From NCBI GenBank assembly GCA_029953675.1, contig JAMWBK010000007.1, positions 1,116,001 to 1,180,000 on the forward strand: a stretch of 64,000 nucleotides of DNA, read 5' to 3'. This DNA is from Rhodosorus marinus CCMP1338. Taxonomy: Eukaryota > Plantae > Rhodophyta. Shown one piece after another: positions 11,601 to 64,000 of this stretch (position 1 is the stretch's first letter; every line of letters starts with the position of its first letter). The notes beneath the pieces are model-generated. The model saw only the letters and a program-made list of their open reading frames with translations, did no database searches and was not told the origin of the DNA. Position numbers and translations under genes: made by a program.

Positions 11601-11670
11601 ATGTCAGCCCACTTGTCTCGTCATCAGAATCCTCCATAGTTGCAAACTCCCAAGAATTGTCCTCCGACAT
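8602..11670 (-). CDS. Formin (FH2) with two N-terminal CBM20 starch-binding domains, a coiled coil and a C-terminal poly-proline region; single exon, about 1022 aa
   Basis: First ATG is at 11670 (MSEDN). CBM20-1: LRFSVNFGTRFGERVYIIGSVPELGEWN..QWDITV..FEYRY..IRWE. CBM20-2: LAYGQNLYILGEPDEIGGWD..GNVWDIVV..FDYKV. FH2: FHWNKV..SLWE, LDSKRARNVEIVL, LLPILPTEDE, LALGNTMNAG..ARGF. About 7 poly-Pro tracts follow FH2. Confidence 0.9.
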   Translation of the reverse strand: MSEDNSWEFATMEDSDDETSGLTSSSEDANQVVITPDENNRVITLRFSVNFGTRFGERVYIIGSVPELGEWNVERALPLVHSLDDLAGDYQWDITVDFGAAASRESNFEYRYFAQANDGQFDPNISIRWENRFNRKAVLHTSDVFLGRSDFDDRYEPARLRIPQNLAYGQNLYILGEPDEIGGWDPVCARRMNWNPGNVWDIVVTFRSSTIEQAFDYKVLSIGPEYEGMSREEQMDLWYCNAEIRTANWGEDWEAYENVKELNVGVKGENQARANLKEALDAVAAQEANVRMLENALIASEERCRELERDMVELRTSRLEEETSSHNKAVSLLSAIQGLLQQDGASADSITEALDMLSNVEGLSPALSKKIKNLRDTSELTLKAVEKKKAEAAKRQLGRSRTPGAGGMAKDGTDQLRTPGSMYGSNSVVQNLDDEFARSESLPTKRFHWNKVPPKSIKGSLWEWIVAGSWFPDKNELVRYFGVTPGKNEPGFSNETEPSSTLRYLDSKRARNVEIVLAKFRRMSLEELVNGLNTANREMFDEESLTLLLPILPTEDELDTIGRESFDLASIDGLHVAEQLFVRFAMVQRLPRKAEAMCLSFHFQNSVTSTVADSSLVRRACQELAEANKFHCLLEFALALGNTMNAGTAKGNARGFSILNLPTMVNTRASMGRFTLLDYAVAVLRKKMPGILEFDSEIPSLRDAATLDHKAIVARGDQVLKSVCDAEAEVQQCRNESGGLAFAAEMADWLEEAEPAREELRESINAMNECADGILHYLPACNKASTVVEIFVALDQFVTQFRKVRDDRRLSESLRSVGDEWIFYEEKSMSKVSSTPSFALSHGSKCTDAGNGDALGDGQASNQSVPNDHEEIPNGESEMGGECTTVTSVKIRPPPPPALSPRPPPSTILSSPKVVEFLAPPPPPPPTISSPPKVVEFLAPPPPPPLRMSPRVEFLAPPPPPPSLKTTSTMAPPPSPPALVPASPTTLATMAPPPPPPAFVPASPTTSAAPMPPPPPPPLAHN
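8610..9000 (-). repeat. Coding tandem repeats in the formin Pro-rich tail: (K/R)(V)VEFLAPPPPPP x3 and (T/P)MAPPP..A(L/F)VPASPT-type units
   Basis: Near-identical DNA blocks on the + strand, e.g. ggcggcggcgcaagaaa(c/t)tc three times and gaggtggcgccattgtc twice. Confidence 0.85.
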
Positions 11671-45311: not shown

Positions 45312-46487
45312 TTAGCTTCCATCTCCGTAGAAGCGGTAGTATCTAATTTCTTGGTTCCTGGCAGCTTCGAGGTCGGTGCTGTCAAACTCGAGCGTTGAGA
45401 ACGCTTTTGTCTTCCCCACGGTAGCGTTGACGGTGATCCCGTATTTGAACTTCGTATCATCGCCAAGGGTCACGCCAAACACTCTCGCCTTCTCTACTTG
45501 CCTTAGGGTGATCGCACTGGACCTGCCCACGCCGCCGAAAAAGTGTATATCTCTGAGTGTGACGTATTTCGCATGGGCGATATCCACCTGCGTGCTCTGG
45601 TTCCTTCCATTAAGAACCTTCACATCAGACAAGACGAGCCTGTTCATTCTGTCCAGTAGCACGGCGTTCTTGCATGCCCTCGCAACAACTCCGTTAATTG
45701 TAATATCACCATGACCCGCGATAAAAGCCTCTGAGTGGATCGCGAAAGTGCATCTCGTCGCGATAACGTTGCTTATAAACACTCTGTTCACATGGGCTCC
45801 CGAATCCGGAGTAAATTCATCGTGATCCTGGAGTGCAGCGGCGTAGAAACAGTTCTCCGCATAAATATCCCTGATGAAGACGTCCTTTGCGCCGTCCGTA
45901 ACCTCAATGGTCCCTCTCTCGATTTGATCATATGCTCGAAGGTTCTCGGCGACGATGTTTCTCGCGACGGCCTCCCCTGAACCGTAGCCAGTAATTGAGA
46001 CAAGATCCCTAGCGTTGGAGTAGCCGACGAGGTCGCGAACAACACCTCCTACAATATCGTACTGGTGTGATTTCATAGGTTGGATTGTAATTCCGTTCTG
46101 AGAACTGTCCCTCATTATCCCTCGCTCGATGCTGAAACCCCCCCTCGTCACCCAGATGAGGGGTTCCCGGTCCTTAAACGCTACAGTGCCAACGTTTCCT
46201 ATGAACTCAAAATCGGTCATTGTGAAGCCCTCCGATTGAACAGACATTAGCGGAACATTCCCGATTCCGCTTCCAAGCTTCGCGTGCAAACCGCGTATTG
46301 TCACTGGCCTTCTCACGCGGATCATTTTCCGAACGGTCCACTGGCATGTTGGGTCCGCGACAAGCTCGGAGTGCGCGGGGGCAGATTCAATCTGAGTTCT
46401 TAGGTCCCGCGAACAATTCAATTCGATCACCTCGTGGCAGGAGCACCCAACCACGAACAAAGCAAACAATAGCGCAAACGTCTTCAT
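45312..46487 (-). CDS. Secreted right-handed parallel beta-helix (pectin-lyase-like) protein, paralog 1
   Basis: Signal peptide MKTFALLFALFVVGCSC. Stacked-strand repeats NIVAENLRA, DVFIRDIYA, RVFISNVIA and DITINGVVA. Intronless. The fold call is inferred from this periodic pattern. Confidence 0.8.
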   Translation of the reverse strand: MKTFALLFALFVVGCSCHEVIELNCSRDLRTQIESAPAHSELVADPTCQWTVRKMIRVRRPVTIRGLHAKLGSGIGNVPLMSVQSEGFTMTDFEFIGNVGTVAFKDREPLIWVTRGGFSIERGIMRDSSQNGITIQPMKSHQYDIVGGVVRDLVGYSNARDLVSITGYGSGEAVARNIVAENLRAYDQIERGTIEVTDGAKDVFIRDIYAENCFYAAALQDHDEFTPDSGAHVNRVFISNVIATRCTFAIHSEAFIAGHGDITINGVVARACKNAVLLDRMNRLVLSDVKVLNGRNQSTQVDIAHAKYVTLRDIHFFGGVGRSSAITLRQVEKARVFGVTLGDDTKFKYGITVNATVGKTKAFSTLEFDSTDLEAARNQEIRYYRFYGDGS

Positions 46488-47377
46488 CTTTTCTTTCACT
46501 TCTCCTCAGCGACCAATCAATCCCTCTCTGAACCTCTACCACTCGGTCCAACCCCGTCAACATCAGTTTTATACCCATCCTCAATTTCCAACGCCGAGCT
46601 GTGTAATGCCTCCAAAGGCGAAACCAACAAACTTCATCATCCGCAATCACAGTAGCTAGCTATCGCACCAGGCAATCACTCACTCACTCGCTCACTCACT
46701 CTATACAGTTGCTTCCAGAATCCAATCACACCTGCGCAACAAGGAATCAGTAGTTCGCGTAACTCGATCGTCGCCCTCACTCCGTTAAGCCAAAATTTGG
46801 CCAAGAATTTGGCCCAAATCAATACAAAAAGGAAAATTAAGACTTTATATTTGCCCAAATCCAATATTTGAGTCACAATTGGACCCAGAATTTCGCAACA
46901 GTCAACCCTTATAGTTGGTTAAAAACAAGTATTTTTCAAAGTTTTTAATGGCTACTAAAAACAGGGGGAGGTGAATCATTTCCGTAAATTTTTTTCCTTT
47001 TGAAAAGTAGAAAATTGCTGTTTGCACAATGGATATTTTAAATGCAAAACGAACTTTTTTGGCTTGTTTTTCAGGAGTTTTGGAAGGACATTTGGTTTTT
47101 GGTCTAGGGTTTGCTGACATAGCCTTGAGCGCTTTGCAGTGGGCATCATGCGAACTAGGGGCGGTTTACTTCAAGATACCCATTGTACCGCAAGGGGTGA
47201 CACAAGAAAAGCATAAGAAGCTACTAGGCTAAGGAGACCCCAGAGCAGGGAATGATACTACGTCTGTCTACGACACGGTGTCAGGACGATAGCATCTTTT
47301 TATACATGGCATGGATCGCCAAGCCATCGCTTCCGGGCCATGTTTGTCGGTTCAGATTCACGCGCACGAAATAGGCG

Positions 47378-47525
47378 CTAGGAACAAAAGCGTAGGAGCA
47401 TCGGCCAGCATGCTGCTAGAAATTCGCCATAGAGCGACACTGAATCGGGGTGGGACTCGGCAGGATGGTCAGTAGAACATTTGTGCCGCCGCTGTAAGCC
47501 TGAATTTTCAAGATGACCAAATCCT
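47378..47525. repeat. Diverged dispersed repeat, copy 1 (partner at 61165-61345)
   Basis: Shared blocks aggaacaaaagcgt, ccata(g/a)agcgacactgaa, atggtcagt..catttg and ttttca..atg(a/g)ccaaa appear in the same order in both copies. Confidence 0.65.
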
Positions 47526-49796
47526 TCCTCAGGACGTTTGGACACAGCTTTGTGGGCTTCGGTGTGCGGATTGAGCTGGGGACTAGGTAGCGACTGCCTG
47601 TGGATTTACTTAAGCTGTTTACATGATAGAGAAAGGCTTAGATCATGTTGTGCTAATAAGAACCCCGTGGACGACGAGAAAACGTTCAAGACACACCACA
47701 GCAAAAGGGCGCGTTCCGGCAGACAGTGACGAGGGAACTGCTTCGGACATCGCTCTTCCGCGTGGAAAAAAAAGAGAAAACACTTTCATCTCGTCCCTGT
47801 CTGTTACCCTGTATGGAACTTCGGAGGGAATGCGTCGACTTGCACAAAGTTGCTCGCCATAAGTGGCCTAAAAGAAGTATTTTTCAATGCACGACGATAG
47901 TGCGCAAACAATGCTTAAAAATCAATCTTGCATGCATCATTTTTGTATTTAAAAAACAAAGAAACCAAACGCTTTTTGCAAGTGATTTCCGAGGCTATTT
48001 TAAAAGGAAAAATGAATTAAATTTGTTTGTCCAGAATTTTTGATTCTGGTTTTGGATGACTTCACGGGGATCCCCACTGGGACTTAGTCGTCGTGGCCGG
48101 TGGTAGCATGAGGATTGGAGTAATGATGGCGCGTGAAAGGCTGGAGATATGGATGATGATGGTTTGTCGATATGATCAAGAAGCTGCCTACAAGGATTAG
48201 AGAGCAAAAATCCAGTGACGTCAAATTTAGGCCTGTCTGATCCTGGTTTTGAAGCGTTTTAACTGAGCAACAAGCTTCTCAACTCAAGTCCGTTTTGTGG
48301 CGAATTTGGCTTGCATAGGAGGGCAGCAGCATTGCTTGCTACATGGATACCTATTCTAATCGAACCCAGTTTTGGCTTGTTTACGATGTGAACGAAAATC
48401 TCGACGTAGTTGAATTGGTGGTGAAGATTGTGTAGCGGACGCACTTTTCCCACTACAGTTGGATTTTTTTTGTGGGTAGGGTTTTCGCACGGCTCTGAAT
48501 AAACGGAGCCAGTGCACTTGGTATATTGGCTGGCCTCCGAATAATTGTGGAAGTGACGTGATGTGTTTTTAGATTCTCGTTCTCTCGGCCTAGCCGCGCC
48601 TTTTTCCCCTCAGTGATGTTGTCTCTGGCTCTTCCAGCATCGCCCTGCTCGACAGACGTCCCTCCGCGCCACTCCATCACTCGATACAGTGCCTCCAAAG
48701 GAAATCTTGATACCATTAAGCCACCCCCAACCAAGAAACGGAAGAGAATTTCCGTATTTTTACCCCGTAGCAAATTTATAGACAAGACGAATTTCCTCCA
48801 CTTATTCGACTTTTCATACGTCCCTATTGACACCCATCGAAATTACCGCAAACCACACTTTTTCTCAAACGAAACATTTCTACGGTAAACCCCGCAACAC
48901 CTCATCCCTACATCGAATGGTTACCTAAAACAAACTTAATCTAGAGATAGTTTCCTAATAAATTCCTAACAATAGGAAGATGAACATATTTCACTATGCT
49001 CCAACCTATTTAATGACAACTTGTTCTTGTTGCTCCAGATTACGTACCCTCCAAACTAAACAACCAGTCCATTCATATTGTTTTGCTATATATTCTTGGG
49101 GGGGACGAAAAAGACCCATTAATGATTGAGAATCTTATTTTTCCACTGGAAGTTGGCGGACTTGGAAACTGGAGTTGATTGACTAGATCTCTATCAGTCA
49201 AAATCTATTTGTCCGATTTCGTCCGATAAAAACGTTTAGTACAAACACGAGTACATATTAGTATCTAATAAAAGAGTTAAAACTTTAATTTCAAAATGAA
49301 ACTAATAGGAAAAATCAGACGAACACGAATCAGACAAGTTTTTTATTATTTAATTCTATCTTGCAAGGATGTATTCGTTTAATTAAAATTATATGAAATT
49401 CCGTCCTTCTCCGACATGTCCGATAACTTTTATCAGACGTTTTGTGACAATCGCAGTATTTTGACTGAACATGGAGGCATCCAAAAGAGTTTTTTTTTTG
49501 ATTTTTGCTTTTTCGGGCTGGTTTACAGTATGTTTTTGTAATGAGCAAAGAGCAGCAGCAGTGGAGTTGTGGAGGCGTCCCCACCCCCCGACTCCCCCAC
49601 AGTGGGGGTTGGAAGAGGCAGAGGGGAGGGGGGGGTTTGGGATCGGTCACGGACGATTTCTGAAGGCTGTGAAGAACTAAATAGACCTTTTAATTTCTCT
49701 GGGAGGAGTCGTGTTGAGGGATGGGTTGAAGGTGTAGTAGAGTCCCACCTGGTCGGAGAAGAGGGTGGATGTTGTTTTTAGTTCGGTAACGGCAAG

Positions 49797-51020
49797 ATGG
49801 TGTCAGCAACGACGTTTGGTATGTGCAGGGTGACGTTTCTGCTGGCGGTGGTGGGTCTGCTGATGGCCACCGGATGCCTTGGCGCGAGGCTGGTCAACTT
49901 GGAGTGTGACAAGTCTTTAAAGCAGCAAGTGGAGAAGGCGAAAGCGAATTCCAAGCTGGTTGCAGACCCAAAATGTAGGTGGGAGACCTCCGAGGAGATC
50001 AATATCAACCGGCCCATGACGATAAATGGCATTAACGTCACCCTGAAGAAGGGTGTTGGGAAAACTGCCATTTTTGCCATTCGAGCTGAGAACGTCGTCA
50101 TGCAAGATTTCGTGCTCACCGGGAACAACGGAACTGTGGATTGGCTGGACAGAGAATCGCTTCTACTCGCACACGCTGGAAAGTTCATCATTCAACGCGG
50201 AGTCTTCAAGAAGGCCTCTAAGAATGGTGTTACTGTCCGGCCAGACCGGAAGAACCCCGTGAACATCGTTGGTGGGATCCTTCGTGACCTCGTAGGAAAG
50301 AAAAACAGGAGAGATCTCGCGTCCATTACCACGACGGTTGTAGACGACAAGCTCTACACTTCTAGCGGAATCGTTGCGGAGCATCTGGAAGCATTTGATC
50401 AGCCGGAGAGGGGGACGATAGAAGTTACGGACGGCGCGTGGGGTATTACGATACGCGATATCTACGCGAAGAACTGTCTGTATGCTGTGGACATACAGGA
50501 CCACGATCAGCATAAAAATGGTGTGGTGAAGGATGTACAGATCTCTGACGTACTCGCGGAGGACAGCACGTATGCCGTCCGCTCGGAAACGTTTATGAAC
50601 GGTCATTCGGATATCACAATCAAGAAGGTTCAGGCCAAGAACTGTATGAACGCCGTTCTAATGGACAGGATCAAGAGGCTGAAGATCCGTGACGTCCACA
50701 TTGTAAACGGGAGGAACGAAAGCACTCAGGTGGACATCGCCAATTCAAGGTATGTGACGCTTCGGGACCTCAAGTTCTCATCCGGCGTGGGCAGATCGAG
50801 CGCGGTGATGCTCCGCGAGTCAACGAATGTGAACATGAAGAACATCGTTCTCGCGAAGGACACAGACTTCAAATTCGGCATCACAGTCAACTCCACTCAA
50901 ACCATGGAGAAGGCCTTTCGAACTCTCACCTTTAAGAACAATGACCTCAAGGCTGCGACCAAAAAGGAAGTCCGGTACCTGAAGTGGCACAAACCCGGCG
51001 AGGAACCAAAATCTAGGTAG
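49797..51020 (+). CDS. Secreted parallel beta-helix protein, paralog 2
   Basis: Signal peptide and family motifs DRESLL, RDL, ERGTIEVTDG, NCLYAVDIQDH and GHSDI. Intronless, 407 aa. Confidence 0.82.
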   Translation: MVSATTFGMCRVTFLLAVVGLLMATGCLGARLVNLECDKSLKQQVEKAKANSKLVADPKCRWETSEEININRPMTINGINVTLKKGVGKTAIFAIRAENVVMQDFVLTGNNGTVDWLDRESLLLAHAGKFIIQRGVFKKASKNGVTVRPDRKNPVNIVGGILRDLVGKKNRRDLASITTTVVDDKLYTSSGIVAEHLEAFDQPERGTIEVTDGAWGITIRDIYAKNCLYAVDIQDHDQHKNGVVKDVQISDVLAEDSTYAVRSETFMNGHSDITIKKVQAKNCMNAVLMDRIKRLKIRDVHIVNGRNESTQVDIANSRYVTLRDLKFSSGVGRSSAVMLRESTNVNMKNIVLAKDTDFKFGITVNSTQTMEKAFRTLTFKNNDLKAATKKEVRYLKWHKPGEEPKSR

Positions 51021-51839
51021 AGTCTGCATTTTGCATATGGAATAGCTATTTAATTGAAAAGCGGGTTTATTAACCAATTGAGCCAAGTTTAGAATTAAGT
51101 TCTCCCAAGCCTGTTCTCCATTGGATCAGCCACAACTGAACACCAAGCAGGAGGCTGCGCTCTGCTCGTTGAATGATCAGTTCGGAGTCCGCCTCGAACT
51201 GACGAGAAAGCAGGTCTTGAGGCATGTCCTGGAATATGCTTGCCTCTGGAAAAATGGTCGCAGAGTTTATAAATCTACAAGAACCCCTTCCCCACACCCC
51301 CCCCCCCGGAGGAAGAGGAGCGTCGCGCTTTTCAACCCAACGAGTTTGGGGTTACATCGCTTTCTCAGCTAGCTAGTGGAGAGTAGAACAGAGATCAAGA
51401 TAGACATCCTGGAGTCTTGTGATTTAGAAGAACGAGAGGCGGATCCTCCACTCGTCCGCGCTGCGCACAAACGGGAACCGCAATGCCTTGTACTGTACAG
51501 CAGCACAAACTGAAGCTGTTAGAGCGTATCAATGAAAAAGCGACAAGCTGGCAGAGGACGTGAATAGGAGTGCTGGATAATCTTTCCCTTGCGCCTCTGA
51601 GAATCCCTGCAGGCTCTCCTCTTGATATTGAGAAGGGACAGTTTGTCGCTCAGCTCCGCAGTTGAGAGAGATGGAGAGAGCTCAGTAGTCTTTTCTACGG
51701 AGATTTGCTCAATTTCCTTTATTTGCAAGTCTGAAAACGTAAGTTGACGTCCATCATATCTGGTAAGCTGTACAGGAGCTGTTTTTGTTTTGTTTTTCGA
51801 AAGTACGATCTTCTTCTTCTAGTCTCCTCAGTTCGTGAA

Positions 51840-52994
51840 TCAAGCACCGGTTGGTCGCACGGGCACAATTTTGATTTCTTCAACCTTTGCCGCTCGGAGA
51901 TTGATTTCCGAGATATCTGCCGACAGGAATTTCGATTTGATCGTCTCGAAGAAGGTCATACCGATACCGAAGGAGGTCCGCTCGCCGAGGGTGATTCCAG
52001 ATACTCTAACGCTGCTCGAGTTCTTGATCAAAACAGCGTTTCCGTTTGAGCTGGTACCGATGAAAGCCACATCTCGTACAGTCATGTTGTCGCTGTTCAG
52101 CACGGCAATTTGCGTCCTTCCTATCCCAGCATCGATCACGCGGACGTCATATAGCCTGCCCCAGTTGAGATTATTGATCTGCAAAGCGACTCTGCAATTT
52201 TCAATGATAACGCCTGAGATAGAGATGTCAAAGTGAGGGATAGAGGTTCTAGATTGAATCCCGAAGCCGCAATTCCTGGCAACGACGTTGTTGAGGAACA
52301 GTCGCCTAATGTTGTGCATTTTTCCGCCCTGATCGTGCATACCAAACGCGAAAACACATCTTTCCGCGTAAATGGTCTGTACAAAGATGTCCTGAACGCC
52401 GTTTGAGACCTCCAGGGCGCCCTTGAACTTGCTGTCGTATGCGCGGAGGTTCTCTACAAGGATGTTCTTGGTAGTAATCCTTCCCTCATTTGTAGTCGAG
52501 ATGAACAGAAGATTTCCCATGTTCCTGTAACCAACGAGATCGCGGATAATACCACCATCTATCTTATCACCACCTGCAATGGGCGCGATCCTCACGCCAT
52601 GGCTCGAGCTCGCTTTCAGAATGCCGTTCTCAATTACGAATCCGCCCTTGTGCACCTTTATGAGCGATTCGGCCTTTGTGACGCTATTCCGGTTGCCAAT
52701 TATCGTAAAGTCGGAGATCGTGACACCAGCAGAAAAGATAGCGAAGACCGGGATGACCACACCAGGGGTCAAGGTGACATGCACCCCTTTTATAGTCAAC
52801 GGGATGGCTATTCTGATTACTTGACCCACAGTCCATTTACATGCCCCATTGGATACGAGCACATCAAACCTCTTCGCAGATTCCACTTGATTCTTCAAGT
52901 CATTGCCGCAGGTCAACACGATCGTCCTCCCTAGACATCCCTCGAAGAATATGCACCCAACCAACACCAAGACCCAGACCCGCAACCCCACCAT
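51840..52994 (-). CDS. Secreted parallel beta-helix protein, paralog 3 (divergent motifs)
   Basis: Signal peptide, colinear with paralogs 1 and 2 (KGALEVSNG, RCVFAFGMHDQ, HFDI). Intronless, 384 aa. Confidence 0.8.
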   Translation of the reverse strand: MVGLRVWVLVLVGCIFFEGCLGRTIVLTCGNDLKNQVESAKRFDVLVSNGACKWTVGQVIRIAIPLTIKGVHVTLTPGVVIPVFAIFSAGVTISDFTIIGNRNSVTKAESLIKVHKGGFVIENGILKASSSHGVRIAPIAGGDKIDGGIIRDLVGYRNMGNLLFISTTNEGRITTKNILVENLRAYDSKFKGALEVSNGVQDIFVQTIYAERCVFAFGMHDQGGKMHNIRRLFLNNVVARNCGFGIQSRTSIPHFDISISGVIIENCRVALQINNLNWGRLYDVRVIDAGIGRTQIAVLNSDNMTVRDVAFIGTSSNGNAVLIKNSSSVRVSGITLGERTSFGIGMTFFETIKSKFLSADISEINLRAAKVEEIKIVPVRPTGA

Positions 52995-53277
52995 CTTTCC
53001 TCCTCACGAGAAACAGAACACACCTCCTCAAGACTACCTCCAGTCCGCTCAATACTACCGAGCGCGCTTCTTTGTCAACAGCTACCTGTTCACCTTGCCC
53101 TTTACTCAACAGAACCTCTTAAAGCACATCCCAAGTCCGGTTCAAGTCAACTCTCAGTCTATCCAAATTTGTAACGGAAACTTCCAATATACCGTAAATA
53201 ACAGTAATATATATCATTTTTATACTCAAAAAAATAGAATAGAATATTTGTTCTTAGCACAACAGAACAAACTCTAA

Positions 53278-53329
53278 TTTACCCGACGCGTACCCAGGGG
53301 TTTTACCCCCTGGGTACGCGTCGGGTAAA
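53278..53329. repeat. Perfect inverted repeat: 23-bp arms, 6-nt loop
   Basis: tttacccgacgcgtacccagggg-ttttac-cccctgggtacgcgtcgggtaaa. Confidence 0.97.
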
Positions 53330-55363
53330 AGGTTGGGGAGAACTGAAACAGGCAAAAGCACAAAAGCGTAAGCACAGGGGTCCATAACCCTAATGACAAT
53401 TCAAAGTTGATCTAGAACAAATATATCGTTTCTTGGGAAGTATAGTTATAATTTGGAAGTAAATTCATCAGTTTAATCTAGGTAAAGATCTAATTTTAGA
53501 AAATAAATAACCTTCTTTTGGGTTTTGTCCCAGGGGGGTTAGAGGTAAAAACTGAGGCCGGGAAGAAAATTTTACAAGGGTTTTGATTAGGAATTCCCCT
53601 GAGGGGTGGGGGCCTGTGGTAGTAGATAAACAATAGATTGAAGACGATATTGATGTACTTATCACAGTTGAAAATGACTAGACTTATGGCACTGGTGAAG
53701 ATATGAATAAAAAATTTTAATTTTTTAATGTCGTAACCGTTGGATTTCGAAAGGTGGTAAAAAAATTTCGTTTTACTACTAGAATTTATTTTTGAAATAC
53801 AGATAATCCTTGGGCTGATCAGAAAAGATGCAAAAATTGTATTTTAATATTGGTATTTCTTTCGTTGAGGTTCGTTCCTTTTTTTTTTGGGGGGGGCGAG
53901 GAGAGTATTGTTGTGGGGGGGAATATGGACGGAGAGGAGGTTGGGGAGGCGGTACTGGGAAATTTTGCATGGCATGGAGGAGCGCGGCTGGACTGTTTCA
54001 ATTGTATTTCAGCAGACGAATGCAAGCCTTTGGTCGATTGTTTGTTAAGGCCGTCGTTCGAATGTGGGAATTTTTTTGAATTCGTTCTGTAGACTCAATT
54101 TGGATCTCTCGGGGAAGTGCCTGGGATGCTTTCAGGGGACCTTATTATTGGCGAATGCAGTAGAATTGATCAATAAAGTACGGCTAATCTGAAAAGCGAT
54201 GGTTTGACTGACAAGCAGATGGGGTTTGTAGCGGCGGACATGCAAGTTTGAATTCAGCCAATAGGCTGAAATTGGAGAAAGCAGCCGGGCTCCAGCGGGC
54301 GTAGCTTCATATGCACCCTTGTAAGGAGAGCGGACAAGTCACTACGGATGGTAGATCCCGGGCTACCACAGCAAAGTTACACTCCGTCCAGGTTTGCGGC
54401 CATACAGGTTTCCACAGATACTTCATTCAGCATAGAATTCAGAATACTCTCGCTCCCGTGACCAGGGTCCATAGATTCCACAACTATACCTCCACGGATC
54501 CAGTATTTGAATTTGATCGACAACATTCTAGTTGTACATATGTGATGGAATGAACACCGCCGTTCAAGCTCAATCTGAAGAGACGGACAGAATGACACAT
54601 CGAATTAGCAAAATTTGCTAATAGCGGACGTTTACGCCAAACAAATCGTAGTACAGGGAAAATTGTACTATGCATCAAGATTTTCTGCCAATACAACAAG
54701 ATTCATCTTTGTAAACGGGGTACTTAGGAATACTATGTGCTAGCCATATTCCTTTTTTATTTATGAAATTTAGTCATTGTCATCGTTCAAGTTTTGCTTT
54801 GACGGGGGTGTATGCTGAATGATAAATGAACCACTGTTATTGGTTGCCGAGTGATACCTGAAAAAAATTATACTTCGGTAGGATGGGCATATAGTACATC
54901 GTACGTTGTTAGTATGATCCCGTTGCTCAGTGCGCGGTTAGACTAATGTCTATGCGGTTGGCTGTGGCGTTCATCTGACTCGAGAACGCACAGAACGTGA
55001 TTGCCATTGTGCATAGATTATCTAGCGAGCTCATGACTGTACAGCGCTTCAGACCTTTGTTCTAAAATATGATTGAGATAGATTTTGGAACTCCCTCGGA
55101 ATGCAATACTTGGTCGCACTGATTACCTGTTGCAAGGTACCGCTTACACTTTCAGAGAAACGCCAGTAGGTGTCAACGAGGAGCAAGATCCAGTCAGTCG
55201 AGCTTTCCGAACGCTTTTTTACGTTTGGGTTGACGCTGAGTATTGTAGCTAAGCCCAAACGGACTTTGGAGAGTACTGCAGTCACGGGTTCGGCATTCGC
55301 TCAGAAAGGATCGATTTGGTTATACTTCACCTTTTTATGACTATAAAATTATAAAAACACTGC

Positions 55364-56563
55364 TTAAGTGGTTTCTGAACGTCCAGATGGACCCCGTTTA
55401 CCACCCCACAACAGGGCAGCCCAGTGTGGAGGAATATCCGCGACCTGAATCTCCTGACGTTTCACTGCCGCCAGGTCAACTTGAGATATCTGAAAGCCCG
55501 ATTGGGTTTCTCGGTTCTTTTTGAATACACTTATGCCGAAATGGAAGTTTGAGCTCCGGTCGACAGTGACTCCAGCGATACGCACGTTGCTCGATTGCAT
55601 TACCATGATCGCTCCTCGTGCTTTACCTCCACCGACAAACGACACGTCTCGAATTTTCAGGTCCTTACAATTGATTATCTCCAGGGCGTATCCAGTAGTC
55701 CTTGGAGCTATTACCCTCACGTCATCGACTCTAACCCAGTCGAGATTCTGCAGCTCCAAAGCCTTAATGCAGTTCTTAGCAAAAACCCTGGAGGTGGAAA
55801 CATCCCCGTGCCTGATCGATTCGACCTGGGAAACAATAGCGAAATCTGACCTAACAGCGACGACGTTGCTGACGAAGACTCTCCGGATAGTCTCGAGCTC
55901 GCTCACCCCATGATCCTGAATCGATACCGCGTAATAACAGTCGATCGCGTACACATTCCTGACAAACATATCCTCTACGCCGTCACTTATCTCAACCGCA
56001 CCACGATCCCTGCTGCCGTAGGCTCTGATATTCTCCACGACAATGTTCTTCGTAATGGTCTTCCCTCCATCGAGTGTGGTGAGGGAAACGACGTCACGAT
56101 TGTTTAGAGTCCCTATGAGATATCGAAGTACGCCCCCAGTGATTGAAGGGCTCCCCTCAATTGACCTCACCACAACCCCATCCTTTGTTGAGTTGCGAAA
56201 GGTTCCCCGAGCGATGTGAAATCCGCTCTTGAACACTTGCATCAACGCTTGCCTCCTTGAATCCAAAACCACCATGTTGTTTCCATTTAGCTCGAAGTCA
56301 GTAATAGTCACAGACTTTGCGAGGATCCTCAGCAGAGGAATTGGGTTTGTAGAGTTCAGAACAACCCGGATGCTCCTTATCGTCATCGGCTTCAGCACCA
56401 GGATAGGTTTCGACTCCTGCCATACGCACATCCCCGATCACCTCAGAGTATGCTTACGCATTCTCAATCTGATCCTTAAGTCCCTTGCCACAATCCAGTG
56501 GAATTGTGATACCAGATACAAAAGCTGGGAATAAAAAATCAGAGAAAACAAAACCAGCTTCAT
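55364..56563 (-). pseudogene. Beta-helix paralog 4, disabled at the 5' end; 355-codon downstream ORF still open
   Basis: The signal-peptide ATG at 56563 (MKLVLFSLIF) is followed by a frameshift in a T run (FPAFVSGITIPLDCGKGLKDQIENA), a TAA at 56454-56456 and a second frameshift near 56432 before MCVWQ. The rest carries intact RGAVEISDG, IQDH and HGD motifs. Confidence 0.78.
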
Positions 56564-57352
56564 CTCTACTACGAAAACGAACGCACACGCCTCCAATCCC
56601 TCTCTCCCGCCACTTATCCATCGCAGTAGTGGTGCAAACCTCGCAACTCATCGTCACTTAGTAATCAATGACTCTCACCAGTGGAGCAATGTTAACCTAA
56701 ATTATCTGAAGAACCTATTGCCACGCCTCCCAACCTCGCCACTAAACGGATTCCTGCGCTGGGGTTCGCGACTCGCGACTTTGCTTATTGTCCGGACGGA
56801 GAAGCCAATTTTATCTTATACGTTACCCGATGTTCCTTTATTTTAATTAATAGGAGTATTTATACCGTACTGACTTTATCGTGTTAATGATATTAACAAT
56901 ATTGTAGGAGGGAGCACAGTCCGCAAAGTTTGTAAGTAAATTGATGCACATCCGATTGCGGACTGACTGCTCCAGCTTCAGGGTGACTTGGCGAAGTAGG
57001 AATCGAGCTAAGAAATCCCACTTGCAGTATAAGGCAGAGTGGCAGCTTGGAAGGGGCGGTGCTGGAGAGAAACTGGAAATTTGGCTTTCAATCATGGTTT
57101 TTTATTTAGCATGTCAAGAAGGGAGAGCTAATGAGCGAAACGAGGGTAAGTCCAGCGGGGAAACTATAGAGGTACGGGTTGGAGGCCCCCTGCTCTTGCG
57201 TACCAATCGTCGTGGTATGCCATCTCCGTGTCGAATAAGTGCGGTATTCACTCCCGCGTGCCGAAAATGTCTAGAAAACTCGGGATCGCTAGCATATGTT
57301 CAAACATCGGTAGGGGCTATGGTTTCGTGGTGCACGATCGAATACCAATGCC

Positions 57353-57940
57353 TTAAGGGATCATGCTTGTCCTTCGCACTCGAATGCGCTGTTTTCGAGC
57401 AGCCACGAGGTCTGCTTGTGATATTTTGAGACTTTCTGCAGCGCTTTTCGGTTTCAGTGCCACATAGATCCCATACCGCGCTTTTGAGTGTTTCCCGAGG
57501 GTGATCCCCTCTATGCTGACGTTTCTGGGAAACAGAACTGAGATCGCTTATGACCGGCTTTCCTCCAATAATAGAGATGTCGCGAAGTTTGAGATCCGCG
57601 CAGTTGTAGATGTTAACAATAGGGCCGCTTCCACGGGACCCAATAACACGAACCTCAACGACACGGACCCAGTCTAGATCCTTGAGACGTAACGTCTGTC
57701 TGCACTCCTTGGCTATTACGCTCGTTATTGACACATCTCCGTGACGTACCCCATGTACCTGCGAGAGAACCGCGAAGTCAGAGTTTATCGCAATCACGTT
57801 GCTAATAAACATCCCCTTAATGATCTGAAGATAACCCAGGCCATGGTCCTGGACTACAACATAGAAGCAATTCTCCGCGTAAACATTTCGAAAAAACATG
57901 TCCTCAACACCATCGCTGATCTCAACAGCACCGCGCAGTA
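57353..57940 (-). pseudogene. Beta-helix paralog 5, 5'-truncated and frameshifted; closest to paralog 4
   Basis: Begins abruptly at RGAVEISDGVEDMFFRNVYA..VQDH..RHGDV. After a frameshift near 57555, the other frame reads AISVL..ISQADLVAARKQRIRV to a TAA at 57353. Confidence 0.82.
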
Positions 57941-58292
57941 GTGAAGACCACCCCGGACTCTTTGGTGCGATGGAATAGTAGCAGCAGCAGCAGCAATCTC
58001 TCTCAGATATTCGTGTTCTTGATCAGGGAGCCTCAATTTTAATGTAGTCTAGGAAAAGAAATTGATTTATTTTTTTTGTCCGAGCCTAAGTTCAATCTTT
58101 AAGATTGATTTGGATTGGTCTTGCAAAAATGTGAGCTGGGGAAGCGACCACAAAAATAAGACACTTCCTAGTACCATATTAGAAGGCTTCAGAATAGAAT
58201 ACTTCAACTCTTCAAAGATAAAGGAATTTATTTCTGGAAGCTTAGATGCAGAAGCACGACCCGGGTGTTCGTAAAGCCGTTTCATGAACGGG

Positions 58293-59468
58293 TCACCCCC
58301 TAAACCGTCGGATGATCACGCCATTCCTCGCCGCCTCAAAGCGGTTATACGCCGTAGTAACAGGAACGCCTGTAAGTGAAGGAGGAACCTCAACCCTTAA
58401 CCCTGCCCAGAACTGGGTGTCACTTTCTAGTACAACGGATCCCACGTAGAGCTCAGTACAATCGTTCGTCGCGATTGCAATTCCTCTGTGCCTACTATTG
58501 CGGAAGACTGCATTACTCAATCTGACTCGATTACATTCCTCAGCTAAGACGATTGGGCTGCCTGTCTTTGGCTGCTCAACCTGCAGGAATCTCATACTGA
58601 CATCGTTCATGTACCTCAGGTATACAGCCTGTCTACAATCCGAGAATTCGAGTCTAGTATACGTTATGTCCGAGTGCCCGATAGGGCTCGTTTCGGAGAT
58701 AACACCGTATCTAAGATCTCTTCCTCTAATGTTATAGAATCGGATATGATGATTGGCTTGGATCTGACTCTCTGCATCACCGGCTCTCTCTCTGCGGATA
58801 TGATCTTGAATTGAAACAGCGTAGAAGCATCGTTCACAGTACACATTTTGAACAAATATCCACTGGCATCCATCAGCGACTTCTACAGCTCCCTTCTGTG
58901 CACTGTCGTACCCTTCGACTCCATTAATGTATATCCTAGAAGTAAGTAATCCGTGGCGTGAATTGACAGCCACAACATCTCTTTCAACGCCATAGCCGTA
59001 AATGTTTCTTATCGAACCGCCAGTGATTGGTGTGCGAGTGCTTCCCACCGGCACAACAGTAATCCCGTCCCTGGATGAGTTGACGAATGTACCGTTTATA
59101 ATTGAAAAACCACCTGCGTTTACGCGAAGAAGAGACTCCCTATCTTCGAACGACACCGTGTCCTTGTTCCCGATCAATTCAAAGTCGAAGAGTTGCACGC
59201 CTCTGGAAGAGATTATCATCGCTGCCGTATTGCCCAGACCCGGCCGCAGCTGGGCCCTGAAGTTTCTGATGCGCAGCGGTTTCCCAATTTGAACCTCTTG
59301 AGACAATGTAAAGGTGCAGTCCATACTCCCCACAAGCTCGGCCCCCTCCGGGGCGTTGCGCACCTGCGTTTGAAAGTCTCTATTGCAATCCAATCTGATG
59401 ACTTGTCCTCCGGCAATCGCAATGCATAGAGCAATCACGACCGCAATGGCCTTCCTGAGCGAAAACAT
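58293..59468 (-). CDS. Secreted parallel beta-helix protein, paralog 6
   Basis: Signal peptide MFSLRKAIAVVIALCIAIAGG; motifs DRESLL, NSSRDG, ERDVV, KGAVEVADG, CFYAVSIQDH and GHSDI. Intronless. Confidence 0.82.
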   Translation of the reverse strand: MFSLRKAIAVVIALCIAIAGGQVIRLDCNRDFQTQVRNAPEGAELVGSMDCTFTLSQEVQIGKPLRIRNFRAQLRPGLGNTAAMIISSRGVQLFDFELIGNKDTVSFEDRESLLRVNAGGFSIINGTFVNSSRDGITVVPVGSTRTPITGGSIRNIYGYGVERDVVAVNSRHGLLTSRIYINGVEGYDSAQKGAVEVADGCQWIFVQNVYCERCFYAVSIQDHIRRERAGDAESQIQANHHIRFYNIRGRDLRYGVISETSPIGHSDITYTRLEFSDCRQAVYLRYMNDVSMRFLQVEQPKTGSPIVLAEECNRVRLSNAVFRNSRHRGIAIATNDCTELYVGSVVLESDTQFWAGLRVEVPPSLTGVPVTTAYNRFEAARNGVIIRRFRG

Positions 59469-61164
59469 CTTGAACAGCTTTTTTTTTGTTTTCACTTTGT
59501 AAAGACTTTGATTTCATCCGTTCCATGTGCATTGTCCTGACCGCCACTGCCTCTCTTCTCATGATTGTAAGCTCGAGGACCCGTTCTTATATGGCAGGGT
59601 GATCGTGAACTCCGACTATTCCCAAAGTACATCAAACGCAAACTACTAAACGCGTCTCTACGTTCGTGATTATGGAACCGGACGTTGAAAGAGAAGCTTT
59701 GTCAGTCTCTTTCGGTTGATCCGGTGTCTGAACAACATTTTCATGAAAGAATGAGATCACCCAATTTGACACGGAATGGTTAGTCTCAACTGAGCCAAAC
59801 TCACAAAGTGAATAATAATTTTCCAAATCTCAAAAGCGACCAGCCCACAAGCGTATTTACCCCACCAGACTGTCAGGAATTGTACAACAATCTGCGGGAG
59901 ACAGACGTGCGAAGCATATGCGCTTCCAGACGGGCAGTGAATGAAACCCCCTGAACAGTAGGTTTGGTTACTGTTACATTACGTTGAATGCTTCAATGTT
60001 TCGTTACGGCATGGCCGAATAAATCCTATGGAACTCTCCGATCGATTGGGCTCACGACCTGAGAGTTGTTTCATGGACGAACTCTAGAGTCAGTCAATTT
60101 TCGGACCGGGTTGATGAATAATAAAACTTTTTCTCAATTTGAGCTCTCTTCTTGATTGAACTCGTTGAATGGAATTCGATGTCTCGAAAGCATCAAAAAT
60201 ATTCGGAAAAGGAATTTGTGGATTTAGAGCCTTCGATGTCGGAACAGAGGCTCTTGTCCCGAGAGTTAACTTTGTACAGAGTTATGGATTGGGTCACTAG
60301 GCTGCTGGTAAGGTGATTGGTTTGATTACTTGACGATTCTCCTAAGTGGAACGTTATTGGGAGCCAGGGAGGAGAACCAAAAAAAAGCTCTGGGTTCTCC
60401 CATCTTTTGATCGAGAAACTACTTGAGGCTGGTCCAGCTTGGGACAGATTCTTTCTTTCTAGGTTGGCTTACCGTGTTCTTGTTGGACGAAACGATGATA
60501 CAGAATCGTCAACGTTTTTCTGTATCGATCGCGTTGTCGTGCTCTTGATTTCCCGCCTCAGTCCGCCACACCGTGCGCTGGCTATGAACCGTGTTCAGCC
60601 CGGAGCTCCTTGCTTGTTTACGGCCCTCATGGGCTATGACGTGACAGTTATGAATTGGTGAGAATTTCGATTCTTTCTGTACAGTAGCGGTAGCCGCTTG
60701 TTCACTTTGCTGCGGTAGGACTGCACTTGGTGAATCAAAATCCACAATACAGCTCGTCCCACCGGATCTAGCTCGTGCCCTAAATAGCGCATACGAAGTG
60801 AAGCTGTCCGAACTTGGAATGCGTCTCCAGCAAGCACGCCTGTTGTTAAACAGATTTTTCGTGTTAGCTCTCGACATACCTAGTATTTTCCGGATTATGA
60901 GTGCCATCCAGGGCTACAGTTACGTTCGTCTCTAGTCCCAGTTTCGGAAAAGGGGGCTTCAGCTCATCGTGCCAGCGAGTCCTATGCCATTTAATTCAGT
61001 ACACTCCTATAGCTTGAGCAACCTACAGGTTGAGGAACACGTTTTGAGGTATGTGCTAGCGTAGGTAGGTGACAAACGAGTCTATTAACTGGTGGTTTTA
61101 GAACATACTCTTGAAACACAACACGCGGGGCAATGCGAACGAGAGACCGTTTATTTCTAGGTAC

Positions 61165-61345
61165 GAGGAACAAAAGCGTGCAAGCCAAGGAGGTAGTAGC
61201 GAGCCCCTGTTAGAATATTACTAGAATATGTCCATAAAGCGACACTGAACCGGCGTGGGAGTACAAGATACTCTGCAGAATGGTCAGTGAAGCATTTGCG
61301 GAGCCACTCCACAGCTTGACTTTTCAGAATGGCCAAAAATTTCTA
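61165..61345. repeat. Diverged dispersed repeat, copy 2 (partner at 47378-47525)
   Basis: Same shared blocks as copy 1, in the same orientation. Confidence 0.65.
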
Positions 61346-63179
61346 CGATGCAAGGCTGAAGGCTTTACGACCTGCTATGAGCGAACAGAGGCTGGCCATG
61401 CTCTCGTACCGTCGTTCCTCCTGTCGGCGAAGAATAGCCGCTTCTGCACCGCAGCATAGTTCGACGGATGGGACATAGGTACTACACACCGGGCAAGTGG
61501 CTGCGAGGTCCACAAGTTATGGGCGTCCGGACAGGGCTGCGTCCGAGACCCGGAGTTCTGCCTTGAAACGCGGCAGCTCCGATCAAGTTACGCGTTGATG
61601 AGCACTGGAGTATGTCAAGTTCTTTCTCAGTTCGTGTGCAAGTGCAATGTTACGCTTTTCTCAGAAATGGCCGCACGAAACGGATAATTTGCCGGATGAA
61701 GAATAGCCGACGCAAAAGAGTCATAAAAGTACTAGTCTGCATCATCGACTCTGCAAACGAAAACAGTTCCGGAAATAGTTCATCGAGGCAAAACTGCACC
61801 ACACCAATCCACTTCAGCTTAGGATCCCAAAATCCTTAGTGCTGGCTTCATTAGTTTTACTGACACTAGGTGCTAGCACCAAGGGCTTGCCTCTCCCATG
61901 AATGTGCAGCCGTCCATGTCGACTTTCCCCCCCTCCGCATATCCTGTACTATCCATGCAGATTCATCTAGTGAATCAACTTGAGTCGAGGAACTTCTTCA
62001 GATCCTTGATCTTGGAGCACAGAGCTCATCGAAATTACTTGGGAGCCATCGATAGACTCCATGAGAAAGGTCAAACGCCGAATTTCTGGATCAAGTTTTG
62101 GCTCTCCTTCTCCGAGCGCCCGCCCGTTCACGAGCTCTTTCGTGTTGTCAACCAAGAACAAGTGCTAGAACACAGCGTGCTTCACCAATTCTGGTACTGC
62201 TCTGTAAACGACGTTAACCCGCCTCCTATAGTTCTTTATTTTGCAGTCGCAAAGTTTGGGAATATGTGCTAGTAGTTGCGGTGGTGAGTTTGTGTATGGC
62301 TCCACGTGTCGAACGTCCCTAATAGAGGGTGAGAACCCTTCGGTGTCGTGTCTCAGCACTTAGGGAGGATTAGAATTCCATACCATATCCATCGGCGCGA
62401 CGTGCGGAGAAGTAGCATGTTTTTTTTATTCTCCGCTTCTTTTCTCCTCCTTTGTAGTCTGGCAGTTGTGCCTACGCCGCGTCATCAATCCGAGCAAGCA
62501 GTAAAAGTACCCCTAATGGGTCCCTTTGGGTCCTGTTGTGACGAATTGATGACGCTTTGATGTTGGAGGCGAGCGGTTTACGCTTTCAGTAGTGTTTCCC
62601 CCCACCTCTTTGTCAGTCTCGGAGTAAACAGATGCAATCCATTGGTCCGAGCTCAATCGAAGAAACTCTTTTAAGTTCAATCACAAAGAAACGGTGAAAA
62701 CTTGAAAAGGTTGTGATGTTGATCATAATGACGAGTTTCGGTAATTTGGAGAAGGGAGCTGTCCGGCTTTTTCCAGTCATGCAACTATGGATCAGAATCA
62801 CCTCGGCTGGGGGAACTGGGCGAAGCTCGACCCACTTGTCTTAGTAGAGCGAGTTCTTGTGCTTTGAGATTAATATCGATCTTTTCATTGTACAGAAGAG
62901 TGCTACAATTTGCGCGGTCTCTTCGATCCAAGCGAAGAAGGTCCACTCCATGAATGCTATTGTCCGCAGTTAGTCCAAGGGGTGGCTCCCAAGGTATCGG
63001 GTGCTCAACTACATCGAAAAGCTTGCTGCACGTGAAGAACCCGAAGCTAATTTTTTTGACTACGTTCACCTATCACACACCCGCAACAAGCTTGTCTGAC
63101 GGAGTAGATTTTTTGCTGGTATAGCACCAGGCGCTCTTGTTTCAAAAGACCTGGTACACAGTCAACAGCAGCATGGATC

Positions 63180-64000
63180 TCATATCTCGAACAGTTTCAG
63201 GGGTTCTCCCGACTCTACATTAATGCTTGAAGTGTTTAGATAGGTCTCTCGCCAGCCGACTGGTTTGTAGAACTCAATCCCATAAGCGAACTGGGTCGTC
63301 TCCCTATCCAGCGTCAAGCCCTCAACCCTCACCCGTTTTGACGAGTGCACAACCATCGCTCCGTCCCTCCCCGAGCTGTCCCTTATGGAAATGTCCTGTA
63401 CCGAGAGATCCCTGCAAGCCTCGAACTCTATCGGAGCGAACTGCTCTCTCGTCCCTTCGACTCTCAAGTCCGAGAGACTTAGAAAGTCAATGTACTTCAG
63501 GAGAATCGGCCTACGGCAGTCAATAAAGACCATGCCGGTGATGTTGATATGTCCGTGACCAGGTCGGTGAGTCTGAGATAAAATTCCATACTTGTTTGCG
63601 ACTCCCACGACGTTGGTGATCTCTACCCGGTTGTTGGTTTCAAGTTCTGATCTTTGGTGGTCCTGTATTGCTATCGTATAGTAGCATCCCCTGGCGTAGA
63701 CGTTCCGAATCACAATGTCCTCAACCCCATCCCCAACCTCCACTGCACCTCTGAGATCACTGTTGAATGCTTTGATATTCTCGACCAGCACATGGCTCGT
63801 AGTAATCGCTCCGTCTCCAGCGGTGGTTAGAGCGACGAGGTCGCGGTTGTTTCCGGTCCCTGTAATGTCCCGAATAACACCATTTCTGACCGGTTCAGGA
63901 TCAATCTTGGAGCTTCTTGAGGCATGAACCATTATTCCGTCTCTTGAGGAGTTCACTAGCCTTCCCCTCTCGAGAATGAAGTTGCCGGCGCTCACCCACA
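63180..64000 (-). CDS. Parallel beta-helix protein, paralog 7 (5' end outside the window)
   Basis: Motifs NSSRDG, NNRDLV, RGAVEVGDG, CYYTIAIQDH and PGHGHI. The ORF is open to the window edge. Confidence 0.8.
   Translation of the reverse strand, partial: WVSAGNFILERGRLVNSSRDGIMVHASRSSKIDPEPVRNGVIRDITGTGNNRDLVALTTAGDGAITTSHVLVENIKAFNSDLRGAVEVGDGVEDIVIRNVYARGCYYTIAIQDHQRSELETNNRVEITNVVGVANKYGILSQTHRPGHGHINITGMVFIDCRRPILLKYIDFLSLSDLRVEGTREQFAPIEFEACRDLSVQDISIRDSSGRDGAMVVHSSKRVRVEGLTLDRETTQFAYGIEFYKPVGWRETYLNTSSINVESGEPLKLFEI

Follow-up and report, generated by a model that had tools for sequence, protein, structure and literature searches.

Candidate secreted beta-helix carbohydrate-active enzymes of apparent bacterial origin encoded in a gene cluster of the red alga Rhodosorus marinus

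The 64,000-nucleotide stretch of Rhodosorus marinus CCMP1338 DNA analyzed here (positions 1,116,001 to 1,180,000 of contig JAMWBK010000007.1; the window) contains, at 45312-64000, a cluster of divergent genes that encode predicted secreted proteins with a right-handed parallel beta-helix fold. The interpretation that we favor, with modest confidence, is that these proteins are members of a family of secreted, single-domain beta-helix carbohydrate-active enzymes (CAZymes) that was acquired once from bacteria, would cleave an anionic glycan in a groove and would be involved in capsule remodeling in the alga. A tblastn comparison of each copy with the whole window, combined with the list of open reading frames (ORFs), identifies exactly 7 homologous stretches (E-values from 1e-118 to 1e-13), all within 45312-64000 and none elsewhere in the window; five of these (A, B, C, F and G) are intact and two (D and E) are pseudogenes. 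The same numbers had been given in an earlier reading of the DNA letters alone (the sequence-only reading), which counted correctly for the window and fell one short for the cluster: in the full contig, an eighth intact copy (H) lies past the window edge, and the cluster comprises 8 copies across ~23 kb. The copies share between 28 and 55% identity in pairwise comparisons, which bears out the strong divergence noted at first sight. All intact copies start with a hydrophobic stretch that resembles a signal peptide (Kyte-Doolittle heuristic), and the cap motif L-x-C-x3-[LF]-x2-Q-[IV], likewise anticipated from the letters, is present in A, B, C, F and G.

Right-handed beta-helix folds include pectate lyases, polygalacturonases of glycoside hydrolase family 28 (GH28), GH82 iota-carrageenases and mannuronan C5-epimerases, and the walls and mucilage of red algae consist of sulfated galactans. 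Copy B was modeled with AlphaFold2 from an alignment of 8 sequences (mean predicted local distance difference test score, pLDDT, 89.8; predicted template modeling score, pTM, 0.86). The model begins with a helix that corresponds to the signal peptide, followed by a short helix in the cap and ~10 coils of beta-strands with regular strand triplets. A Foldseek search of the PDB started with this model yields 71 matches at E<=1e-3, and the top 50 listed are all right-handed beta-helix proteins. Most of the top matches are polysaccharide lyases, hydrolases, epimerases or phage depolymerases, including the RbmB lyase, GH82 iota-carrageenase, GH87, GH28, AlgE epimerases, lyases of polysaccharide lyase family 6 (PL6), the fucoidan lyase FdlA and phage tailspikes; sequence identity is 7-13% throughout, and the best match is RbmB (E 5e-7; template modeling score on the query, TMq, 0.53). 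The beta-helix fold that had been proposed from the letters can thus be assigned to the family with confidence on the strength of the model. At the sequence level, the Beta_helix profile of the Pfam clan Pec_lyase-like (PF13229) matches copies from the window below the threshold (18.4 and 15.9 bits vs 25.9) and bacterial members of the family above it (34-41 bits).

Residue conservation was measured over 20 bacterial and 10 algal sequences, at 25-35% overall identity. The residues that are invariant or more than 90% conserved are a G-N pair, an arginine, the R-D of an R-D-V-V-S-I motif, the G, E, D and G of an R-G-A-V-E-V-S-D-G motif, the Y and Q-D-H of a Y-A-V-D-x-Q-D-H motif, and the histidine of a G-H pair. 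In copy B, whose numbering is used throughout, the polar set corresponds to N110, R119, K142 (lysine or arginine in the family), R172, D173, E209, D212, Y229, Q234, D235, H236 and H270. The conserved residues are spaced 26-36 residues apart, about every 33, and according to the DSSP string of the B model lie on or just after a short strand of successive coils. This periodicity and the DSSP string suggest that they form a line on one face of the helix, the usual position of the substrate groove. The complete polar set is retained in A, B, D, F, G, H and most members of a second cluster described below. Beta-helix polysaccharide lyases (PL1, PL3, PL6, PL9 and the RbmB type) combine a Ca2+-binding carboxylate cluster with a lysine or arginine that serves as the Bronsted base facing the +1 uronate; compared with this pattern, the family has a conserved carboxylate cluster and the invariant arginines R119 and R172 but no invariant lysine.

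The sequence-only reading could not place these proteins in a known family, and the searches made here lead to the same outcome. Pfam yields only sub-threshold NosD and Beta_helix matches and NCBIfam only a NosD match far below the threshold. Searches of PDB sequences, with one protein as the query or with profiles of 8 and 30 sequences, give a best E-value of 2.8e-4, to an uncharacterized protein; the matches to GH28, GH49 and GH87 structures (E 1.6e-3 to 0.19) are confined to generic C-terminal repeats, and no polysaccharide lyase structure is matched at the sequence level. For GH28 in particular, there is no Pfam match at E<=1, and the PDB chains (E 1.6e-3 to 5e-3) align with generic repeats, the signature motifs not having been compared directly; GH82 is not matched at the sequence level in either Pfam or the PDB. 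When 1.84 billion representative proteins were searched exhaustively with a HMMER profile, 229 relatives were identified at E<=1e-3, 94 of them at E<=1e-30, and in the 90%-clustered database all homologs are named either "hypothetical protein" or "right handed beta helix domain-containing protein". Judged against Pfam, NCBIfam and PDB sequences, not against CAZy/dbCAN, GH174 or GH187, the sequences appear to form a small, discrete, uncharacterized family. No described family that matches these genes was found in the literature, and the R. marinus genome paper does not discuss the family or its clusters. What appears to be undescribed is the family as such, along with its bacterial origin, its confinement to Rhodosorus among the eukaryotes sampled, the collinearity of two clusters, and a degenerate subclade; the fold and the general functional class are already known.

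All 20 eukaryote-like representatives that were looked up come from R. marinus (the genome, the transcriptomes MMETSP0011 and MMETSP0315 of the Marine Microbial Eukaryote Transcriptome Sequencing Project, MMETSP, and short JGI contigs from the same sequence clusters). A scan of GTDB species representatives with a 9-sequence bacterial alignment detects 39 bacterial loci in Planctomycetota, Verrucomicrobiota (Opitutales), Kiritimatiellota, Lentisphaerota, Acidobacteriota (Bryobacterales), Hydrogenedentota, Bacteroidota and others, with two cultured strains among them, Rhodopirellula sp. SWK7 and Pelagicoccus mobilis. In an unrooted maximum likelihood tree of 122 rows, the 29 Rhodosorus rows form one clade (Shimodaira-Hasegawa-like approximate likelihood ratio test, SH-aLRT, 99) opposite 93 bacterial rows from at least 8 phyla. 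All 14 family genes examined in the genome are intronless (the span equals 3 x product + 3); the R. marinus genome has ~3 introns per gene (PMC10250338). For the neighboring serpin, DUF1517 and sigma-70-like genes, the spans exceed what the products need, implying introns. The features by which horizontal transfer is usually recognized, namely a single eukaryotic clade, surroundings of host genes and an atypical (intronless) gene structure, are all found here. Given that the family is present in many bacteria and, among eukaryotes, in one Rhodosorus clade, the simplest reading is a single transfer from a bacterium to the alga followed by expansion; the family would then be not an algal invention but bacterial in origin. 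The direction of transfer is suggested by the breadth of the bacterial distribution, the tree being unrooted. The transfer is likely to be old because the composition of the genes is fully ameliorated, with host-like G+C content at third codon positions (GC3).

The genes of the cluster are nuclear genes of the alga. The contig is 2.21 Mb long, with the window in the same orientation; the upstream part of the window contains eukaryotic genes of the host type (a formin with an FH2 domain, a WW-domain protein, an E1 dehydrogenase and an NT-C2 protein), serpin and nucleoporin genes are also among the eukaryotic neighbors of family members, and GC and GC3 of the family genes are like those of host genes. 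Contamination or a mis-assembled bacterial fragment is ruled out by the 2.2-Mb contig, the eukaryotic neighbors and the host-like GC and GC3.

The bacterial homologs provide functional clues. The family domain is fused to an S1 sulfatase in P0054, to an F5/8 type C module in P0008, to a 3-keto-disaccharide-hydrolase/DUF1080 module in P0038, to DUF1961 and FG-GAP in P0033, and to DUF6250 in P0045; concanavalin-like modules are also found among the fusion partners. The gene order on the contig that encodes P0008 is FGE-sulfatase, GH29 fucosidase, a protein with a type IX secretion system (T9SS) tail, sulfatase, the family gene, GH88, oxidoreductase and ThuA. Among the 135 nearest neighbors (the two closest genes) in the 39 GTDB loci, the commonest Pfam family is Sulfatase, with 12 genes, followed by the TonB plug and other beta-helix proteins, and 21 sulfatase genes are spread over 10 of the 39 loci. 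For example, a Kiritimatiellales locus has the order esterase-sulfatase-x-hydrolase-family gene-sulfatase-sulfatase, and in Rhodopirellula SWK7 the family gene is found together with a gene for a LamG and beta-helix protein and three sulfatase genes. These fusions to sulfatase and binding modules and the sulfatase-rich loci strengthen the link between the family and polysaccharides, and support the view that a part of the bacterial family acts on sulfated glycans in a catabolic role; the context is compatible with either a hydrolase or a lyase.

Several observations weigh against assigning the family to glycan-cleaving enzymes. The enrichment of sulfatases close to the family genes is modest, 12 of the 135 nearest genes compared to 8 of the 189 distant ones, that is, further genes of the same loci (odds ratio 2.2, one-sided Fisher p=0.07), and about three quarters of the bacterial loci lack an obvious glycan-catabolic context. 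GH88, which hints at a lyase, is found in the P0008 locus only, and GH88, GH29 and ThuA are almost absent around the 39 loci, so that the lyase hint is not general. Finally, the structural matches are at the level of the fold only (TM 0.35-0.55, ~10% identity), and hence no catalytic machinery can be transferred from a known enzyme.

Given the fold, the family boundaries, the phylogeny, the residue conservation and the genomic context outlined above, a possible mechanism with its substrate and cellular role can be proposed. The groove would run along six successive coils and would be lined by N110, R119, K/R142, R172-D173, E209-x-x-D212, Y229, Q234-D235-H236 and H270. An anionic polysaccharide, probably sulfated and/or containing uronic acid, would lie in this groove and undergo endolytic cleavage. 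The carboxylates D173, E209, D212 and D235 could act as acid and base in an inverting hydrolysis or, alternatively, could form a site for Ca2+ and the substrate carboxylate, with R172 or a histidine serving as the base in beta-elimination. In bacteria, the enzyme would partner with sulfatases in catabolism, whereas in the alga the most likely role of copies A, B, F, G and H would be to split or restructure the sulfated capsule bound to the cell, and C with its relatives would probably be non-catalytic binding proteins. The Stylonematophyceae possess a cell-bound capsule that is both sulfated and carboxylated (PMC9031348); no description of the capsule chemistry of Rhodosorus was found in the literature.

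Among the characterized beta-helix enzymes, GH82 iota-carrageenase (1h80, 1ktw, 3lmw) is a hydrolase of a sulfated red-algal galactan and ranks second in the Foldseek search (E 6e-7). Catalysis in GH82 likewise relies on Glu, Asp, Gln and His residues from adjacent coils. The similarity is limited to TM 0.35-0.41 at 11-12% identity, the polar residues differ in order and spacing, and GH82 has extra domains that enclose the chain, which the family lacks. The GH28 polygalacturonases, GH87 alpha-1,3-glucanase and GH49 isopullulanase share with the family a common fold and PbH1-type repeats and are inverting hydrolases with carboxylates on successive coils; however, the matches span generic repeats only and not the conserved strand motifs of the family.

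The comparison with RbmB, the alpha-1,4-polysaccharide lyase that degrades the Vibrio cholerae polysaccharide VPS (9ozd, 9ozl), bears on the possibility, which we consider rather unlikely, that the algal proteins are secreted glycanases directed against foreign polysaccharide, such as the extracellular or biofilm matrix of colonizing bacteria, in defense or phycosphere control. RbmB is a secreted single-domain right-handed beta-helix of similar size (~360 residues) with a groove along the helix, it is the best structural match (TM on the target, TMt, 0.58), and its target is an extracellular matrix polysaccharide in biofilms (PMC12993940). The divergence of the paralogs and their birth-and-death turnover are typical of families that face varied external targets, and many bacterial members come from soil or freshwater metagenome-assembled genomes, where algal sulfated galactan is not an obvious substrate. 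Nevertheless, the identity to RbmB is 10%, with no match at the sequence level; the conserved set of the family is rich in carboxylates and histidine, and the catalytic base of RbmB, K227 (PMC12993940), has no invariant lysine as its counterpart. Furthermore, the sulfatases associated with the family suggest that the targets are sulfated glycans, a class more typical of algae and animals than of bacteria.

An involvement in biosynthesis, where the proteins would be polymer-level modifying enzymes (e.g., similar to uronate C5-epimerases) tailoring the extracellular polysaccharide of the alga itself, also appears unlikely. The mannuronan C5-epimerases (the A-modules of AlgE and the brown-algal ManC5-E) present a close precedent, in which a bacterial beta-helix gene was transferred to an alga, secreted and expanded; Foldseek matches the A-modules of AlgE6 and AlgE4 (E 3e-5 and 3.5e-4; TMq 0.51 and 0.40), and the N-terminal cap has weak matches of the NosD/CASH type. 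The catalytic strand of AlgE and AlgG, Y-G-F-D-P-H-D/E, resembles the Y-x-x-D-x-Q-D-H strand of the family. However, the motif is one residue out of register, the algal paralogs do not conserve the D at +3, and there is no match to AlgE or AlgG at the sequence level in the PDB. The bacterial context, with sulfatases, TonB-dependent receptor plugs, GH29 and GH88, and binding modules, is catabolic rather than biosynthetic. In addition, the recipient in this case is a red microalga, which to our knowledge does not make alginate.

The degenerate subclade that includes copy C raises the question of whether any of these proteins are enzymes. C lacks R119, R172, D173, D212, Y229, Q234 and H236, and has A108, G160, N161, N198, F215, H220 and Q222 (its own numbering) at the respective sites. 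The same residues are lost in its partner from the second cluster and, apart from H238, in the transcribed ortholog P0162. The subclade also includes P0158, P0058, P0082, P0161 and the second domains of P0012 and P0156, so that in both two-domain proteins the second beta-helix is of the degenerate type. Regardless of these losses, the members of the subclade are intact and transcribed, suggesting that C and its relatives are probably conserved non-catalytic paralogs. This persistence, with the reuse as a second domain, and the presence of the beta-helix adhesins PfbA and Vag8 among the weaker structural matches could be taken to mean that all copies are structural wall proteins, adhesins or lectins. 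For the family as a whole, this appears quite unlikely, considering that bacteria and the alga, at 25-35% overall identity, have in common ~12 conserved polar or charged residues, four carboxylates and two histidines among them, a pattern difficult to account for without catalysis, and that the sulfatase and carbohydrate-binding fusions in bacteria fit an enzyme. The polar residues have been lost wholesale in one subclade only, which implies that they matter in the remaining family; a purely structural or lectin role is likely to apply to the subclade of C only. It is exceedingly improbable that the proteins are NosD-like periplasmic accessory factors of copper-centre maturation: the weak matches of the N-terminal cap to NosD (20.2 bits for PF05048 and 26.1 bits for TIGR04247) are under the respective cut-offs of 23.6 and 300 bits, NosF, NosY and NosZ are not among the 25 most frequent neighbor families listed, and we know of no role for NosD in the eukaryotic secretory pathway; this identity was rejected on the failed cut-offs and the neighbor context.

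Among these possibilities, secreted CAZymes that act on an anionic glycan of the algal capsule remain the preferred interpretation. A more specific version can be put forward tentatively, namely that the Rhodosorus proteins are the eukaryotic members of a founding, unclassified GH or PL family for sulfated or anionic glycans, with a carboxylate- and histidine-rich groove unlike those of GH28, GH82 and the known beta-helix lyases. Under this version, the family would have been captured once from bacterial degraders of algal polysaccharides and turned to the capsule of the host itself, and one subclade would have given rise to dead, lectin-like helices fused behind catalytic ones.

The genome encodes at least 16 copies of the family, and ~20 paralog lineages can be distinguished, in agreement with the lineage expansion suggested by the sequence-only reading. 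A second cluster, on another chromosome (contig JAMWBK010000003.1, 1920140-1943285; L043 2992-17995 and L044 10001-11173), consists of five tandem genes and a sixth one beyond two unrelated genes, all 6 of them intact, and its gene order is collinear with that of the window cluster (Table 1). This pairing indicates the block duplication of an ancestral array with at least five genes. Local events came later: B arose from the A lineage and was inverted, G and F split, the D lineage gave off a truncated copy, E, and both D and E decayed. The spacers of the cluster share no DNA except for a 60-nt imperfect direct repeat (73% identity) located in two different intergenic spacers (47396-47455 and 61201-61260), and hence there is no sign of a recent duplication or a transposon vehicle; no tRNAs, Rfam families or tandem repeats were detected in the cluster region. 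Thus, the history of the family is one of old birth-and-death evolution, not a recent burst, and to describe the cluster as expanding is misleading, given the age of the duplications and the decay of two copies. Similarly, the reported mixed orientation comes down to B as the only inverted member.

Table 1. Members of the window cluster, with their coordinates in the window and their collinear partners in the second cluster (percent identity)
Copy	Position	Strand	State and product	Partner in second cluster
A	45312-46499	-	intact; 395 aa (GTG start) or 391 aa (ATG at 46487)	L044_10001 (66%); NDN08_003322 in cluster 2, likewise 66%
B	49797-51020	+	intact, 407 aa; the modeled copy	
C	51840-52994	-	intact ORF, 384 aa	L043_16853 (L043:16853-17995; 60%)
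D	55364-56563	-	pseudogene; 355-aa body ORF 55364-56431, degraded 5' end	L043_10001 (73%); closest intact relative NDN08_003317, 73%
E	57353-57953	-	pseudogene; first ~190 codons gone, begins near family residue 195	
F	58293-59495	-	intact; 400 aa (GTG start) or 391 aa (ATG at 59468, the annotated product)	L043_8126 (same clade)
G	63180-64000 in window; whole gene to window-equivalent 64364	-	3' 271 codons in window; intact, 394 aa	L043_8126 (same clade)
H (NDN08_004539)	window-equivalent 67077-68282, outside window (L041 1187-2392)		intact, 401 aa; ~2.7 kb past G	L043_2992 (57%)

Among the individual copies, A has the signal peptide, the L-x-C cap and the complete polar set, and its ortholog in another strain is 89% identical. 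Orthologs in other R. marinus strains are transcribed, as seen from complete MMETSP transcripts, among them one 88% identical to B. In the pseudogene D, a signal-peptide remnant (56504-56563), a cap remnant in a different frame (56457-56510) and the body are separated by at least 2 frameshifts within the first ~60 codons, with an in-frame stop at 56454-56456. E is 55% identical to D and consists of two pieces in different frames (57528-57941 and 57356-57547), with a stop between them near residue 330. The deposited annotation lists the remnants of both as protein-coding genes (55364-56431, 355 aa; 57300-57899, 199 aa). A paralog of F with 80% identity, NDN08_005013 (P0011), is located on a third contig (1.16 Mb); its UniRef name, "Altered inheritance of mitochondria protein 24", is an apparent mis-annotation. 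G, which runs off the window edge, is complete in the deposited contig, as had been supposed. Beyond H, a gene-free stretch of 7.5 kb precedes a serpin gene, and a two-domain member of the family, NDN08_004250, is encoded elsewhere on the same contig.

Outside the cluster, the formin mentioned above is encoded by a single 1031-aa ORF (8602-11697, minus strand) that has two CBM20 starch-binding domains at its N-terminus in addition to the FH2 domain (E 2.6e-66). This pairing is unusual and might represent a link between actin nucleation and the cytosolic floridean starch granules.

If the activity of these proteins is confirmed, they would represent a new family of carbohydrate-active enzymes for sulfated polysaccharides, a class of marine carbon for which the lack of enzymes limits turnover; the family is found mainly in uncultured Planctomycetota and Verrucomicrobiota. 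The pairs of catalytic and degenerate paralogs present a natural experiment in the evolution of pseudoenzymes. Should the proposed functions hold, these enzymes could also provide tools for tailoring the exopolysaccharides of red microalgae that are of commercial interest. It would then follow that a red alga took a degradative enzyme from bacteria that feed on algal glycans and expanded it to at least 16 genes, in parallel to the acquisition of the C5-epimerases by brown algae.

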